In this document: in pieces, positions 36,553 to 47,995 of the stretch
How positions within the stretch are numbered: the stretch's first letter is position 1
Layout of the letters: every line of letters begins with the position of its first letter
NCBI RefSeq assembly: GCF_000737315.1
Contig: NZ_JMCB01000034.1
Coordinates: 62,001 to 126,000, forward strand
DNA length: 64,000 nucleotides
Source of the DNA: Hyalangium minutum
GTDB taxonomy: Bacteria; Myxococcota; Myxococcia; Myxococcales; Myxococcaceae
Direction of reading: 5' to 3'
Made by a program: the position numbers and the translations under genes
The notes under the pieces: generated by a model
The model's input: the letters and a program-made list of their open reading frames with translations, nothing else
Told to the model about the DNA's origin: nothing
Databases searched by the model: none

Positions 36553-37914
36553 CTACTCTGGCTTCTCGTGCCCGTGCAGGCCGTGCTTCTTGAGCAGCTT
36601 ACGCACATAGATCCGGGCGATGCCCGACTCGCGCGCAGCCCGTGAGATGTTGCCCTTACATCGCTCCAGGAGGTTCTTCAGGTAGTCGCGCTCAAAGCCC
36701 TCGACGATCCGCTCTTTGGCTTCCTTGAAGGGCAGCTCCAGATCGGGCCCGGCGGGGGCCGCGAGGGGCGTGGCCATGGGCGACATCTCCGGCAACGCCT
36801 GCTCGCCCAGGTTCACCACGCGCTGGACGACGTTGCGCAGCTCGCGCACGTTGCCGGGCCACGGGTACTGCTCCAGCAGCGCCCGCGTCTGCTCCGACAG
36901 CGCGCTGGGCGGCCGGTTCATCCGCTCCAGCATCGCGTCCACCAGCAGCGGGATGTCCTCGGGCCGCTCGCGCAGGGGCGGCAGCGTCACTCGCAGCACC
37001 GCGAGCCGGTGGAACAGATCCTCCCGGAAGCGGCCCTCCTTGACGGCGGCCTCCAGGTCTCGGTGCGTGGCCGCCACCACCCGCACATTCACCGTACGGT
37101 AGTCGTTGGCGCCCACCCGCTTCACCTGACGCCGCTCGAGCACTCGCAGCAAGCGGGGCTGAAGCTCGAGCGGGAGATCTCCCACCTCATCCAGGAAGAC
37201 AGTGCCTCCATCCGCCCGCTCGAAGGCCCCAGCGCGCTCCGCTTGGGCCCCGGTGAAGGCCCCCCTCACATGGCCGAATAGCTCGGACTCCACCAGCGAG
37301 GGAGCAATGCCCGCCAGATCCACGATGCTGAACGAACCCTTGCCGCGAGAGCTCACCGTGTGGATGCCCTCCGCGCACAGCTCCTTGCCTGTCCCCGTCT
37401 CGCCTTGGATGAGGACGTCCGCATCCCCCGCAGCCAGCCGCTCCAGCAGGGTGAAGACCTCGCGCATCTTCCGGCTGCCCCCCACCAACCCTCCGAACCG
37501 GGTGTCCGAGGAGAGCGGGATGACGTGATCGCGCGCGTCCTCTGGGACGATCTTCAGCTCGGTGGCGCCGAGCCTGACGATCGCGCCCAGACGCACCTCC
37601 AGCTCGGTGAAGCGCATGCGCTCGCAGAACGAGCCATTGCGAGAGCCCAGGTCCCGAGCCAGCACCCGATCCTCGCGGACATCCAAGGCCAGGTGCTGCC
37701 GTGACACAGTCCGGTCATTCAGGACAATGTCACACGCCGGATCCGATCCCAGCCGGTAGCTCTTGACCTGGAGCGAGATGCTGCGGCCTGCGTGGGCCCC
37801 CGACAAGAAGACGATCTTTCTTCTGAGCGTGGGGAGATGAATCTCAGGATCGGGAGTCGTGCTGAACATCGATGGATGGCTCGTGTCATCCTGGTCTGGA
37901 AACACTGGTGGCAA
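36553..37914 (-). CDS. FHA-domain sigma54-dependent transcriptional activator (bEBP)
   Basis: FHA ([19 protein letters not shown]...DLGSRNG), [28 protein letters not shown], Fis HTH. Start codon uncertain (37914/37905/37869). Confidence 0.93.
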
Positions 37915-37993
37915 CGAAAACTACCACCCCAGGTCAACACAAGAGAACAGCCTCCACTCCAACAAGAAAGACTCAGAACCACTGAATTCACCT

Positions 37994-38027
37994 GCCTCGC
38001 TCGCTCGGCTGGAGCAGCGAGCGAGGC
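37994..38027 (-). terminator. Hairpin terminator after the RCC1 gene
   Basis: Perfect 12-bp stem GCCTCGCTCGCT (37994-38005) / AGCGAGCGAGGC (38016-38027), 18 nt past the RCC1 stop. Confidence 0.6.
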
Positions 38028-38045
38028 CCCCCCACTGTCGGAGCA

Positions 38046-40667
38046 TCACCCTCCGATAAGACCGACTCCACCACCGGGAGGAACGAAGATGCTCCCGTCG
38101 CCCGGCAGAGCCGTGACCTGCGTGGGGCTCGACCGGTTGGTGGTCGTCCCCTCTCCGAGCTGGCCGTAGCTGTTGTAGCCGCAGGACCGGACGATGGCGC
38201 CCTTGTCCAGCGCCATCGTGTGATGGTGGCCACCAGAAGAGAGGTCCACGATAGAGCTCAAGAGGGTCGCCGCCGGCGCCGTGCGGTTGGTGGTCGTCCC
38301 ATCACAGAGCTGGCCATAGGTGTTGTAGCCCCAGCCCGACACGGTCCCATCCCTCCTCAAGGCCAACGTGGAGTAGCTCCTCGCGACGATTGCGATGACA
38401 TCGCCGAGGCTCAGGACCTGCACCGGCGACGAGCGGTTGGTGGTCGTCCCGTCTCCGAGCTGGCCGTAGTAGTTGTAACCCCAGGCCCTCACCGTGCCGC
38501 TCGTGGCCAGCGCCATCGTGTGGTACATGCCCGCAGAGACAGCGGCGATGCTGGGGAGTCCGGGGACCTGCACCGGCGACAGGCAGTCGGTGGTCGCTCC
38601 GTTGCCCAGCTGGCCGTAGGAGTTGTAGCCCCAGGTCCACACAGTGCCGTCCGCCTTCAGTGCCACCGTGTGGTAGATGCCCGCAGCGATGGAGATCACA
38701 CCGTTGAGGCCAGGGACCTGCGTCGGCGAGGAGCGAGAGATGTTCGTTCCGTTTCCGAGCTGGCCGTAGCCGTTGTAGCCCCAGGTCCACACGGTGCCGT
38801 CTGCCTTGAGCGCCACCGTGTGGTAGCCTCCGGGGGAGACCGCGATGACGCCCTCCAACCCGGGCACGAGCTGCGGCGTGGGGCTGTTGGTGGTCGTCCC
38901 GTTGCCCAGCTGGCCGTAGCCGTTGTAGCCCCAGGTCCACACGGTGCCGTCATCCTTCAGCACGACCGTGTGGTGGGTGCCCACCTCCGCGTCGACGACG
39001 CCGCTCATCCCCGTCAGCAGTGCAGGCGTGAGCCTGTTGGTGGTCGTCCCGTCGCCCAGCTGGCCGTAGGAGTTGTAGCCCCAGGTCCACAGCGCCCCGC
39101 CCTTCCCCACGGCCACCGAGTGGGCAGTGCCGCCAGCCGTCGAGACGATCCCGCTGACCACGACGGCCACGGGCGAGAGGCGCTGGGAGACGGTCCCATC
39201 TCCCAGCTGGCCGTAGTAGTTGTAGCCCCAGCCAAACAGGGTGTGAGGGTTCGTCACGACCAGCTGGCGCTTCTGGGCCACTGTGTGAGTGGCACCCGCG
39301 CCGAACATCTTGACGCCGGTCATCCCCGGGACCTGCACCGGCGTGGCGGAAGTGGTGGTGCTCCCGATTCCCAGCTGTCCGTTGTAGTTGGAACCCCAGG
39401 CATACAAGGTGCCATCCTGCCGCTTGGCCACGGAGTGGAAGGCGCCGGCGGCGATCTCGACGGCTTGGGTGAGGCCCGACACCTGCACCGGGAAGACGCT
39501 GTCGACGGTGGTCCCATTTCCCAGCTGGCCGTAGGAGTTGGAGCCCCAGCTCCACGCGGTGCCGTCGCTCTTCACGCTGACCGTGTGGTAGTAGCCTCCG
39601 GAGAGGGAGCGGACGCCGCTGATGCCCGCCACCTGTACGGGCGTCAACCGGGTGAGGGTGGTCCCGTCCCCCAGCTGCCCGTTGGCGTTGGATCCCCAGG
39701 CCCAAGCGCTTCCGTCCTTCTTCACGGCCACCGTGTGGAGGTAACCCGCGGCGATGCCGAAGACGCCGCTGAGACCGGACACCTGCACGGGCGTCAGGCG
39801 GCTCGTGGTGGTCCCATCCCCGAGCTGGCCGTAGCCGTTGTAACCCCAGGCCCACACGGTCCCGTCCGCCTTCAGCGCCACCGTCCGAGCGTAGAAGGTC
39901 GCCACCGCGACGACGTCGGTCAGGCCGGGCACCTGCCTGGGCACCGCATGGAGCGTGGTGGTGCCATCTCCGAGCTGGCCGCTGGAGTTGTACCCCCAGG
40001 TCCACACGCTCCCATCCTCCGTCACCGCCGCCGAGTGCGTGTCCCCGGCCGACACGGAGACGACGTGGCTCACCCCCCTCACCCTCGTGGGAGAATTGCG
40101 CTGGGTCCTCTCGCCGTTGCCGAGCTGGCCATAGGTGTTGTAGCCCCACCCCCACACAGAGCCGTCCGACTTCACCTCCAGCGTGTGGTTGCCGCCGAGG
40201 CTCAGGCTGGGACAGAACTGGACGACGTTCCGGAACACCGTCTTGGGCAGGTTGTTGCAGTAGCTGCGATTGCCATTGCTGTCGATGATCATCGGGTAGG
40301 CCTTCACCTCGAAGCCGTGCACCCCGCAGCCCACCCCGGCCTCGCTGAAGAACCACTCCCCCGTCTCTCCCACGCGCTCGTCGACCGCATGCAGCGTGCC
40401 GTCGACGTAGTACTCGAGCTTCGCGGCATTGGCCCCATTGATGGCCGTCCAGGTTCCCGCGCCGGCCAGCTCGCCCTCGAAGGAGCTCACGCCTTCCAGC
40501 GAGAGGTCGTCGATGGCCGCCCCCGACGAGCACAGCGCCGACTCCTGGGTCCCCAGCGTCTCCTCCGGGCCGATCCCTCCCTCTTCGGGAGGAGCACCAC
40601 AAGCCGCCAGCAGCACCGAGGCCAATACCGCCAACACATCCGAACGCTTCAGGTCTCTCTTGAGCAT
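38046..40667 (-). CDS. RCC1/BLIP-II repeat lipoprotein with N-terminal Ig-like domain
   Basis: Lipobox LLAAC; 14 'WGxNxxGQLG' repeats; start set at ATG 40667. Confidence 0.9.
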   Translation of the reverse strand: MLKRDLKRSDVLAVLASVLLAACGAPPEEGGIGPEETLGTQESALCSSGAAIDDLSLEGVSSFEGELAGAGTWTAINGANAAKLEYYVDGTLHAVDERVGETGEWFFSEAGVGCGVHGFEVKAYPMIIDSNGNRSYCNNLPKTVFRNVVQFCPSLSLGGNHTLEVKSDGSVWGWGYNTYGQLGNGERTQRNSPTRVRGVSHVVSVSAGDTHSAAVTEDGSVWTWGYNSSGQLGDGTTTLHAVPRQVPGLTDVVAVATFYARTVALKADGTVWAWGYNGYGQLGDGTTTSRLTPVQVSGLSGVFGIAAGYLHTVAVKKDGSAWAWGSNANGQLGDGTTLTRLTPVQVAGISGVRSLSGGYYHTVSVKSDGTAWSWGSNSYGQLGNGTTVDSVFPVQVSGLTQAVEIAAGAFHSVAKRQDGTLYAWGSNYNGQLGIGSTTTSATPVQVPGMTGVKMFGAGATHTVAQKRQLVVTNPHTLFGWGYNYYGQLGDGTVSQRLSPVAVVVSGIVSTAGGTAHSVAVGKGGALWTWGYNSYGQLGDGTTTNRLTPALLTGMSGVVDAEVGTHHTVVLKDDGTVWTWGYNGYGQLGNGTTTNSPTPQLVPGLEGVIAVSPGGYHTVALKADGTVWTWGYNGYGQLGNGTNISRSSPTQVPGLNGVISIAAGIYHTVALKADGTVWTWGYNSYGQLGNGATTDCLSPVQVPGLPSIAAVSAGMYHTMALATSGTVRAWGYNYYGQLGDGTTTNRSSPVQVLSLGDVIAIVARSYSTLALRRDGTVSGWGYNTYGQLCDGTTTNRTAPAATLLSSIVDLSSGGHHHTMALDKGAIVRSCGYNSYGQLGEGTTTNRSSPTQVTALPGDGSIFVPPGGGVGLIGG
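38130..40200 (-). repeat. Intragenic ~150-bp RCC1 tandem repeats (14 units)
   Basis: Recurring plus-strand 'tggccgtag..gttgtagccccag' blocks, each matching one in-frame RCC1 blade. Confidence 0.85.
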
Positions 40668-47791: not shown

Positions 47792-47830
47792 GTTGAGCCC
47801 CTCATTGCGTGGAACGGCTCGCAGCCCTGG

Positions 47831-47846
47831 TGCACGGGGCGAGCCA
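47831..47846 (-). promoter_or_regulatory. Candidate sigma54 -24/-12 promoter of the five-gene secreted operon
   Basis: Minus strand TGGCTCGCCCCGTGCA (2 mismatches to TGGCACG-N4-TTGCA); predicted +1 ~29 nt before ATG 47791. Confidence 0.55.
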
Positions 47847-47923
47847 CCCAAGAGGGGTTGGCCTTCTTTCATCGATCTACCGTGATTTCACGGGGTTACG
47901 GTTCTCCAGGGAATACAGGAATC

Positions 47924-47995
47924 CGGCAACAACCGTTATCACTGATAACTCACATGCCCTGGGAGTGGCTCGTGGCCTGGTAACGCGCGTTATCA
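47924..47995. promoter_or_regulatory. Palindromic upstream boxes (putative bEBP sites)
   Basis: CGGCAAC-AACC-GTTATCA (47924-47941), perfect GTTATCA-C-TGATAAC (47935-47949), TGGTAAC-GCGC-GTTATCA (47978-47995). Confidence 0.5.

Follow-up and report, generated by a model that had tools for sequence, protein, structure and literature searches.

The 64-kb window of the Hyalangium minutum genome analysed here (the whole stretch of DNA, to whose positions all coordinates refer) carries a cassette of about 15 kb in which a sigma-54-type promoter, a set of palindromic enhancer boxes and the gene of an FHA-domain bacterial enhancer-binding protein (bEBP) appear to form one regulatory unit. We consider this reading probable, also when a second promoter upstream of an RCC1-repeat lipoprotein gene and an activating step by an adjacent Ser/Thr kinase are included; the evidence backs the promoter, the enhancer and the activator, backs the RCC1 promoter with qualifications, and leaves the kinase step unproven. 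What is new is a concrete candidate DNA motif for the FHA-bEBP class, a proposal well supported by comparison of the sequences. All cassette genes and promoter sites are read on the minus strand, in the order box/sigma-54 spacer, geneA, geneB, geneC, geneD, S8 peptidase gene, a 205-bp spacer holding two further boxes and a second sigma-54-type element, RCC1, FHA-bEBP and kinase.

Loci were retrieved by a search with an alignment of geneA homologues and by exact-protein look-ups, the comparison loci measuring up to 21 kb each. Nine are orthologous, namely, the window and eight others that share its gene order: Hyalangium sp. (L001), H. versicolor (L002), H. gracile (L033), and the five non-Hyalangium loci, hereafter the Corallococcus/Myxococcus loci, from Corallococcus sp. 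(L003), C. terminator (L004), M. qinghaiensis (L020), M. landrumensis (L034) and a metagenomic contig (L035). A further 22 loci are paralogous: they contain a geneA/geneB pair, but no match to this bEBP, and the other cassette genes are not in synteny.

The geneA promoter and its putative enhancer boxes

The initial annotation had described two GG-N10-GC elements, predicted transcription starts near 47820 and 40670, and four palindromic boxes. The elements and boxes were found on the minus strand at the positions it gave, its predicted +1 values are identical to those computed here, and two elements that it had overlooked, a third geneA box (box 2) and an element at about -77, are added. In the following list, TGGTAACgcgcGTTATCA to TGATCACagctGTTATCA are plus-strand readings of the boxes, and box centres are given relative to the predicted +1.

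47846-47831, minus strand: geneA -24/-12 element TGGCTCGCCCCGTGCA / TGGCTCgccccGTGCA, recognised by sequence and conserved in all nine orthologous loci.
40696-40681, minus strand: RCC1 -24/-12 element TGGCGTGGCGAGTGCA / TGGCGTggcgaGTGCA, recognised by sequence and conserved in L001 and L002.
47978-47995: putative upstream activating sequence (UAS) box 1 of geneA, TGGTAACgcgcGTTATCA (minus strand TGATAACgcgcGTTACCA), centre -166.5, 25.6 bits, conserved in the nine loci.
47943-47960: putative UAS box 2 of geneA (minus strand AGGGCATgtgaGTTATCA), centre -131.5, right half invariant and left half weak.
47924-47941: putative UAS box 3 of geneA, CGGCAACaaccGTTATCA (minus strand TGATAACggttGTTGCCG), centre -112.5, 17.2 bits, conserved in the nine loci.
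47883-47897, minus strand: -77 element AACCCCGTGAAATCA, conserved between the boxes and the geneA promoter.
40793-40810: putative UAS box of RCC1, TGGTCACagcaGTAGCCA, centre -131.5, 19.1 bits, conserved in L001 and L002.
40827-40844: putative UAS box of RCC1, TGATCACagctGTTATCA, centre -165.5, 29.5 bits, the best of the window, conserved in L001 and L002.
40734-40749, minus strand: -77-like element AAACCCAAGGAAATCG, the RCC1 counterpart of the -77 element, with a second degenerate copy just upstream.

In both -24/-12 elements, GG and GC are spaced by 10 nt, close to the sigma-54 consensus TGGCAC-N5-TTGCW, from which each differs at two of the 11 specified positions (TGGCTC or TGGCGT instead of TGGCAC, and G replacing T in TTGCW). 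With the +1 placed 12 nt past the C of the -12 motif, transcription is predicted to start at about 47820 for geneA and about 40670 for RCC1. The geneA leader would measure 29 nt in the window, with the Shine–Dalgarno (SD) sequence GAGGGG, and 29-31 nt across the loci, with a conserved SD. A scan for sigma-70 promoters on the minus strand between 36400 and 48300 found none.

The boxes follow the consensus TGrTAAC-N4-GTTAyCA, an 18-bp inverted repeat of which box 1 of H. gracile is a perfect palindrome. They lie in the range of UAS, that is, inverted repeats about 80-200 bp upstream of the -24/-12 element. In box 2, the GTTATCA half is invariant in the alignment of geneA promoters, and together with the left half of the box at 47924-47941 it forms a perfect 15-bp palindrome with N1 spacing (GTTATCAgTGATAAC, 47935-47949).

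Could such matches be due to chance in a GC-rich genome? Loose sigma-54 patterns are indeed frequent, with roughly 2-11 per locus of up to 21 kb, and the strict pattern TGGC-N7-KTGCA, which matches both strands of the 64 kb only twice, at the two promoters, has an expectation of 1.66, so that the number alone is not significant. The significance of the promoters hence lies in placement and conservation. The box half GTTATCA occurs four times on both strands of the 64 kb, for 0.82 expected, with all occurrences inside the two spacers. Furthermore, a palindromic position weight matrix (PWM) built solely from the boxes of orthologous loci places the four boxes of the initial annotation above all other sites of the window, at 29.5, 25.6, 19.1 and 17.2 bits, for a null maximum of 11.2 bits on average and 16.5 bits at its peak. 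This rarity, the joint placement and the conservation across genera contradict the chance explanation, which the conservation effectively refutes and which we hold to be hardly credible.

With regard to conservation, the -24/-12 element and the three boxes are present upstream of geneA in nine out of nine orthologous loci from three genera (Hyalangium, Corallococcus and Myxococcus), despite variation of the genes located upstream of the cassette. The expectation, formulated in the initial annotation, that the box motif should recur upstream of orthologous operons is thus borne out. In all nine loci, a core GGTGGCgCGC..CGTGCACAAGG is found at -55 to -57 from the geneA ATG, and the boxes are spaced by 34-35 bp and then, from box 2 to box 3, by 19 bp. 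Their centres are at -166.5, -131.5 and -112.5 in the window, L001 and L002, and at -156.5, -122.5 and -103.5 in L003, L004 and L020, which also have an extra box at -275.5. These lineage shifts relative to the promoter, of which there are only two, amount to 9-11 bp, or about one helical turn, as expected if the helix face matters for looping. A six-sequence alignment has 43 invariant columns out of 61 within the named elements and 39 out of 119 elsewhere (Fisher p = 1.7e-6), a test in which the elements were named after the data had been seen and the Corallococcus/Myxococcus sequences are closely related.

The -77 element is a candidate site for a DNA-bending protein. Its assignment to IHF was considered and rejected, as the WATCAA half is partly present and the TTR half absent; it is kept here as a candidate bending site.

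Two other features of this region were noticed. Over its first ~20 nt, the predicted geneA leader (47800-47830, minus strand; consensus CACAAGGGCCGCGAGCCGT) shows a cross-genus conservation nearly equal to that of the -24/-12 element. The extra box, TGGTAACCGGTGTTACCA at 9686-9703 of the C. terminator locus, occupies the same position in L003, L020, L034 and L035, and is perfect in L004 and L034, with 13 of 14 positions matching in L003, L020 and L035. It lies 119 bp farther upstream than box 1, with the divergent kinase gene beginning about 100 bp from it on the other side, and may couple expression of the kinase to the same regulator.

The FHA-bEBP as candidate activator

36553..37914, minus strand: FHA / sigma-54 AAA+ / HTH_8 enhancer-binding protein of 453 residues, assigned with Pfam.

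Pfam recognises Sigma54_activat (5.8e-64), FHA (1.9e-13), Yop-YscD_cpl (2.6e-24) and HTH_8 (1e-7) in this protein. The Walker A, Walker B and GAFTGA motifs are invariant in six orthologues, which are 81-90% identical overall, and the Fis-type C-terminal helix–turn–helix (HTH) is nearly invariant, which fits the conserved box motif.

Boxes matching at least 12 of 14 positions are present in every locus carrying the orthologous bEBP, whereas the 22 paralogous loci contain two stray, isolated matches and none at the geneA/geneB promoters. Position and co-occurrence point to the boxes as putative binding sites of the adjacent FHA-bEBP. It might be argued that the boxes are real but bind another regulator encoded elsewhere, such as a repressor or a global factor, and that the bEBP acts through other sites or no specific sites. 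Palindromes of such half-site length suit many HTH families, and the perfect 15-bp palindrome GTTATCAgTGATAAC could be a separate operator overlapping two boxes. We find this improbable, given the strict co-occurrence of the boxes with the orthologous bEBP in nine loci and their lack at the promoters of the 22 paralogous loci, their location between -103 and -166 relative to a conserved sigma-54 promoter, the indels measuring a helical turn, and the match of a nearly invariant HTH to a conserved motif.

As for the expression of the bEBP itself, two potential autoregulatory boxes at the start of its gene, 37897-37914 (10.3 bits) and 37909-37926 (3.8 bits), fall under the null maximum and were dismissed as chance matches. 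Five loci share a conserved block TGGAGTGGAGGCTGTTCTCTTG in the RCC1-bEBP spacer (37930-37990, minus strand), and four of the five have a GC-rich hairpin just upstream of it; this block may belong to the bEBP's own promoter.

The kinase and the possible input signal

33172..36546, minus strand: Hanks-type Ser/Thr kinase with a TPR region (Pkinase 4.3e-31, TPR_12 2.4e-106).

The kinase gene starts 6 nt past the bEBP stop codon. Its translation contains the motifs VALK, with the catalytic Lys, HHDFKPDN (HHD, hence non-RD) and DFG, and a transmembrane helix is predicted at about residues 372-390, followed by a TPR region of roughly 730 residues. Linkage of the kinase to the cassette is found in six of the nine loci, either downstream of the bEBP, as in the window, or divergent upstream of geneA, as in the five Corallococcus/Myxococcus loci; it was not seen within the visible flanks of the H. 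versicolor and H. gracile cassettes. We infer that the kinase may activate the bEBP, and regard this step as the weak link of the model.

The FHA domain, through which such a signal could be read, has as its best structural relative in the PDB the entry 3gqs, and also matches OdhI and GarA (E 1.5e-6 for GarA/OdhI) and, weakly, EmbR. Canonical FHA domains bind phosphothreonine through G-R, S-x-x-H and N-G. The phosphate-contacting Arg of this set, which should follow Gly56, is replaced by Ser/Thr in all six orthologues examined, and 3gqs likewise lacks this Arg, while other residues of the phosphothreonine signature, S71, R72, H74 and N93, are kept. The N-terminal tail preceding the domain is variable, yet holds the segment S18-T19-T20-P21-D22-P23-E24, invariant in six orthologues. 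By analogy with the ETTS tail of GarA and OdhI, we propose this STTPDPE segment as a possible phospho-acceptor; the PDB entry 2kfu is entitled 'Rv1827 pThr 22'.

A paralogous module, found in H. versicolor (L028, 7888-17100), comprises a sigma-54 element TGGCACGACTGATGCT, geneB, geneA, an FHA-bEBP that has the canonical G-R, and a kinase to which nSTAND and FGE-sulfatase domains are fused. The repeats upstream of this module (GGCAA..TTGCC) are unlike the boxes described here, and TGGCACGACTGATGCT puts the +1 about 4 nt before the geneB ATG. As an independent combination of these parts, the module speaks in favour of the model proposed below.

A tentative alternative, unlikely but deserving some weight, is that the adjacent kinase is not the input of the bEBP, and that the non-canonical FHA domain serves as a phospho-independent interaction or oligomerisation module, or reads another kinase. 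The change from G-R to G-S/T, shared with 3gqs, would agree with this, all the more as the paralogous L028 bEBP retains G-R, and so would the two Hyalangium cassettes with no kinase beside them in their visible flanks. It is at odds, however, with the retention of the four other signature residues, with the linkage of the orthologous kinase in six loci despite rearrangement, with the invariance of STTPDPE within a variable tail, where an Asp occupies position pT+3, and with the pairing of an FHA-bEBP and a Ser/Thr kinase in the independent paralogous module.

The probable second promoter upstream of RCC1

The RCC1 spacer with boxes and a -24/-12 element is found in the window, L001 and L002, that is, in three of the four Hyalangium genomes and three of the nine orthologous loci. 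In H. gracile, the gap between the S8 and RCC1 genes measures 19 bp, and no gap separates them in the five Corallococcus/Myxococcus loci, where they abut or overlap; the -24/-12 element upstream of RCC1 is absent from these six loci. The arrangement of these six loci indicates that RCC1 is an ancestral member of the operon, as its last cargo gene, to which a second promoter was added with the same control being retained.

In this respect, the view taken in the initial annotation, that the bEBP drives both the secreted operon and RCC1, is supported for the operon, whose boxes track the bEBP and whose promoter is conserved, and applies in a narrower form to RCC1, whose promoter is limited to three of the nine loci. 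Its reservation about the near absence of an RCC1 leader was justified, since a leader of 2-3 nt is predicted (3 nt in the window).

The box-to-promoter geometry nevertheless matches that of the geneA promoter, with box centres at -165.5 and -131.5 in the window, -164.5 and -130.5 in L002, and -154.5 and -120.5 in L001, and the similarity between the two promoter regions of the window exceeds that of shuffled sequences (z about 4.4). Between the conserved elements, the spacer sequence diverges in the three Hyalangium genomes, while the TGCA-to-ATG distance is kept. An SD-like sequence GGGGAGAG, upstream of the predicted RCC1 +1 in the window, lacks conservation in L002, as would suit an mRNA that is nearly leaderless. 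A consensus scan of the minus strand for a terminator between the S8 gene and RCC1 found none, and GC-rich hairpins considered for this role fold no better than shuffles (z -1.6, +0.4 and -1.4). As the spacer holds no credible terminator, transcription from the operon probably runs on into RCC1 as well. A dispersed-repeat or miniature inverted-repeat transposable element origin of the promoter cassettes was also rejected, as no more copies occur in 662 kb of myxobacterial loci and the window.

These data could be taken to mean that the element upstream of RCC1 is no working promoter, that RCC1 is expressed only by read-through from the geneA promoter, and that the spacer is a decayed duplicate of the promoter cassette. 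RCC1 directly follows the S8 gene, with no promoter, in six of the nine loci, the leader would be very short, the SD-like GGGGAGAG would lie upstream of the +1, and none of the three hairpins is convincing as a terminator. We judge this explanation unlikely, because three Hyalangium genomes in which the intervening sequence diverges have kept not only the -24/-12 element and both boxes but also the -77-like element and the distance from TGCA to ATG, with the same box geometry as at geneA. In addition, the lack of conservation of the SD-like sequence in L002 fits leaderless initiation, and the strong TGGCACGACTGATGCT element of the paralogous L028 module also puts its +1 4 nt before an ATG.

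Proposed mechanism

We propose that geneA, geneB, geneC, geneD and S8, and ancestrally RCC1, form an operon for exported proteins that is transcribed from the sigma-54 promoter at 47846-47831. Each of the three 18-bp boxes, about 110-170 bp upstream and spaced by 35 and 19 bp, would bind one bEBP dimer, and the three dimers would template the active hexamer, as in NorR, for which three enhancer sites are needed for oligomerisation and ATPase activity (PMC2831303). DNA looping, possibly assisted by the -77 element, would then carry the hexamer to the closed complex of the sigma-54 holoenzyme; a review covers the binding of bEBP dimers to UAS, relief from inhibition by the N-terminal domain and looping assisted by IHF (PMC7175178). 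The second copy of this architecture, in the window and two other Hyalangium loci, would give RCC1 a co-regulated, nearly leaderless start of its own. Upstream of these events, the membrane kinase would phosphorylate a threonine, the best candidate being in the STTPDPE tail of the bEBP, and the FHA domain would read the phosphothreonine, thereby switching the bEBP from an inactive to an oligomerisation-competent state or back.

Several points weigh against this model. The PWM test is not fully independent, since a consensus taken from the window served to locate the boxes of the orthologues. Near-identity among the promoters of the five Corallococcus/Myxococcus loci reduces the effective number of independent lineages to about five. 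The boxes are assigned to the bEBP by position and co-occurrence only, and the -77 element fits the IHF consensus poorly. To these are added the absence of the RCC1 promoter from six of the nine loci and its leader of 2-3 nt, the replacement of the canonical FHA Arg in six out of six orthologues, and the two Hyalangium cassettes whose visible flanks hold no kinase.

The exported cargo

All six cargo proteins begin with a signal-peptide-like or lipobox sequence, as judged from their translations.

46607..47791, minus strand: geneA, first gene of the operon, 394 residues, signal peptide, all-beta in an AlphaFold2 model (predicted local distance difference test, pLDDT, 80).
44390..46444, minus strand: geneB, N-terminal vitellogenin/MTP-like large lipid transfer protein (LLTP) module with a beta-barrel and helical repeats, predicted with Pfam and AlphaFold2.
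43235..44329, minus strand: geneC, 364 residues, signal peptide, C-terminal half weakly Hint-like from sub-threshold matches.
42425..43213, minus strand: geneD, 262 residues, N-terminal hydrophobic segment, no family match, conserved in synteny.
40873..42441, minus strand: exported S8 peptidase of the subtilisin type, carrying an I9 propeptide and a PPC domain (Peptidase_S8 1.1e-29, PPC 6.2e-15).
38046..40667, minus strand: RCC1-repeat lipoprotein, 873 residues, lipobox LLAAC, double-propeller (Pfam RCC1, 14 repeats, 1.5e-175).

GeneB matches Vitellogenin_N in Pfam (2.7e-13; 49.8 bits for a cut-off of 24), and the top eight Foldseek matches of its AlphaFold2 model (pLDDT 82) in the PDB are MTP, lipovitellin, honey-bee vitellogenin and ApoB100, with E values from 8e-20 (MTP) to 1.5e-11. 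The geneA model has long beta-sheets, and its best Foldseek matches, which are weak, are MTP (E 4e-3, probability 0.99, TM-score 0.31) and lipovitellin; searches of geneA and geneD against Pfam and NCBIfam gave no family match. In most paralogous loci, geneB precedes geneA, matching the order of domains in the animal proteins, whereas geneA comes first in the cassette described here. Based on the geneB matches, the weak geneA matches and the gene order in paralogues, geneA and geneB look like a split, exported vitellogenin/MTP-like lipid-binding module. Homologues of both were found only in Cystobacterineae, and our literature search found no paper on vitellogenin-like proteins in myxobacteria. 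With regard to geneC, matches of its C-terminal half to PT-HINT (E 0.007) and intein_Nterm (E 0.008) are both below cut-off, and this half may be an autoprocessing domain.

Boundaries of the cassette and possible mobility

The cassette is flanked by a 1396-bp direct repeat (31760-33155 and 48207-49602, 97% identity) that corresponds to the 3' part of a class I fumarate hydratase gene, full length at 31526-33154 and 5'-truncated at 48207-49602. Adjoining the truncated copy is a 110-bp duplicate (48097-48206, compared with 51485-51595) of the 3' end of the gene at 51510-52502. These flanking duplications look like the scar of an insertion or recombination event. The flanks of the cassette differ in every species. 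In H. gracile, a sequence GGGTTCGATTCCCGCCGCCTCCA directly after the bEBP stop codon (L033, about 20997-21030) resembles the T-arm and the acceptor 3' end of a tRNA, although no full tRNA was called, and may be an att-like island boundary. As for the window, tRNA-linked integration was considered and rejected, no tRNA genes being found. Taken together, the flanking repeats, the variable flanks and the tRNA-like fragment suggest that the cassette moves as a unit, in agreement with the self-contained regulon envisaged in the initial annotation.

More speculatively, and with the odds against the complete picture, the cassette would be a mobile self-regulating module in which the kinase switches the non-canonical FHA-bEBP, possibly through its GarA-like Thr-Thr tail, and induces a secreted, split counterpart of vitellogenin/MTP along with a protease and a lipoprotein of the beta-propeller type. 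This cargo might serve to capture lipids from prey or the environment. If true, this would be the first defined chain of kinase, FHA-bEBP, enhancer and target, plus a bacterial LLTP system; our literature search found no case in which a kinase, the DNA motif of an FHA-bEBP and a target promoter are defined together, and no paper on the DNA targets of an FHA-bEBP. The cassette offers a kinase, a candidate activator motif and a target promoter within about 15 kb, with a three-site enhancer, a natural two-box variant and a candidate phospho-acceptor. The cargo is also of interest in its own right, as an apparent exported vitellogenin/MTP-like lipid-binding module in a bacterium.

Comparison with known systems

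The closest parallel for the enhancer is the NorR/norVW system of E. coli, which shares with the cassette a sigma-54 promoter, three close inverted-repeat sites, an AAA+ domain with GAFTGA, and a C-terminal HTH (PMC2831303). NorR differs by its NO-sensing GAF domain, in place of which an FHA domain is found here; moreover, the motif here is TGrTAAC-N4-GTTAyCA, and a second promoter carries two boxes.

In myxobacteria, sigma-54 activators number in the dozens and Ser/Thr kinases roughly one hundred. In M. xanthus, a myxobacterium rich in such kinases, FHA-domain bEBPs with the same FHA / sigma-54 AAA+ / HTH architecture are present; they were reportedly described by Jelsbak, Givskov and Kaiser in 2005 in PNAS 102:3010, a paper cited in PMC12288465, and these authors are said to have proposed a kinase-to-FHA input, the point where the two networks meet. 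Compared with these proteins, the orthogroup studied here occurs in Hyalangium, Corallococcus and some Myxococcus, comes with a defined candidate target operon and DNA motif, and has an FHA domain devoid of the canonical Arg.

GarA/OdhI and EmbR are actinobacterial FHA proteins controlled by Ser/Thr kinases, EmbR being a precedent for an FHA-containing transcription activator acting downstream of a kinase. The bEBP resembles GarA and OdhI in having a Thr-Thr motif N-terminal to the FHA domain, like the ETTS motif of GarA. It differs from these proteins and from EmbR in that its output is a sigma-54 AAA+ ATPase, that a short linker of about 13 residues separates the Thr motif from the FHA domain, and that the canonical Arg is absent.

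Regarding the cargo, geneB resembles the animal proteins vitellogenin, MTP and ApoB through its match to Vitellogenin_N and to LLTP structures, and the weak best matches of the geneA model are to the same proteins. In contrast with the animal proteins, the module described here is bacterial, exported and apparently split over two genes, in the order geneA-geneB.

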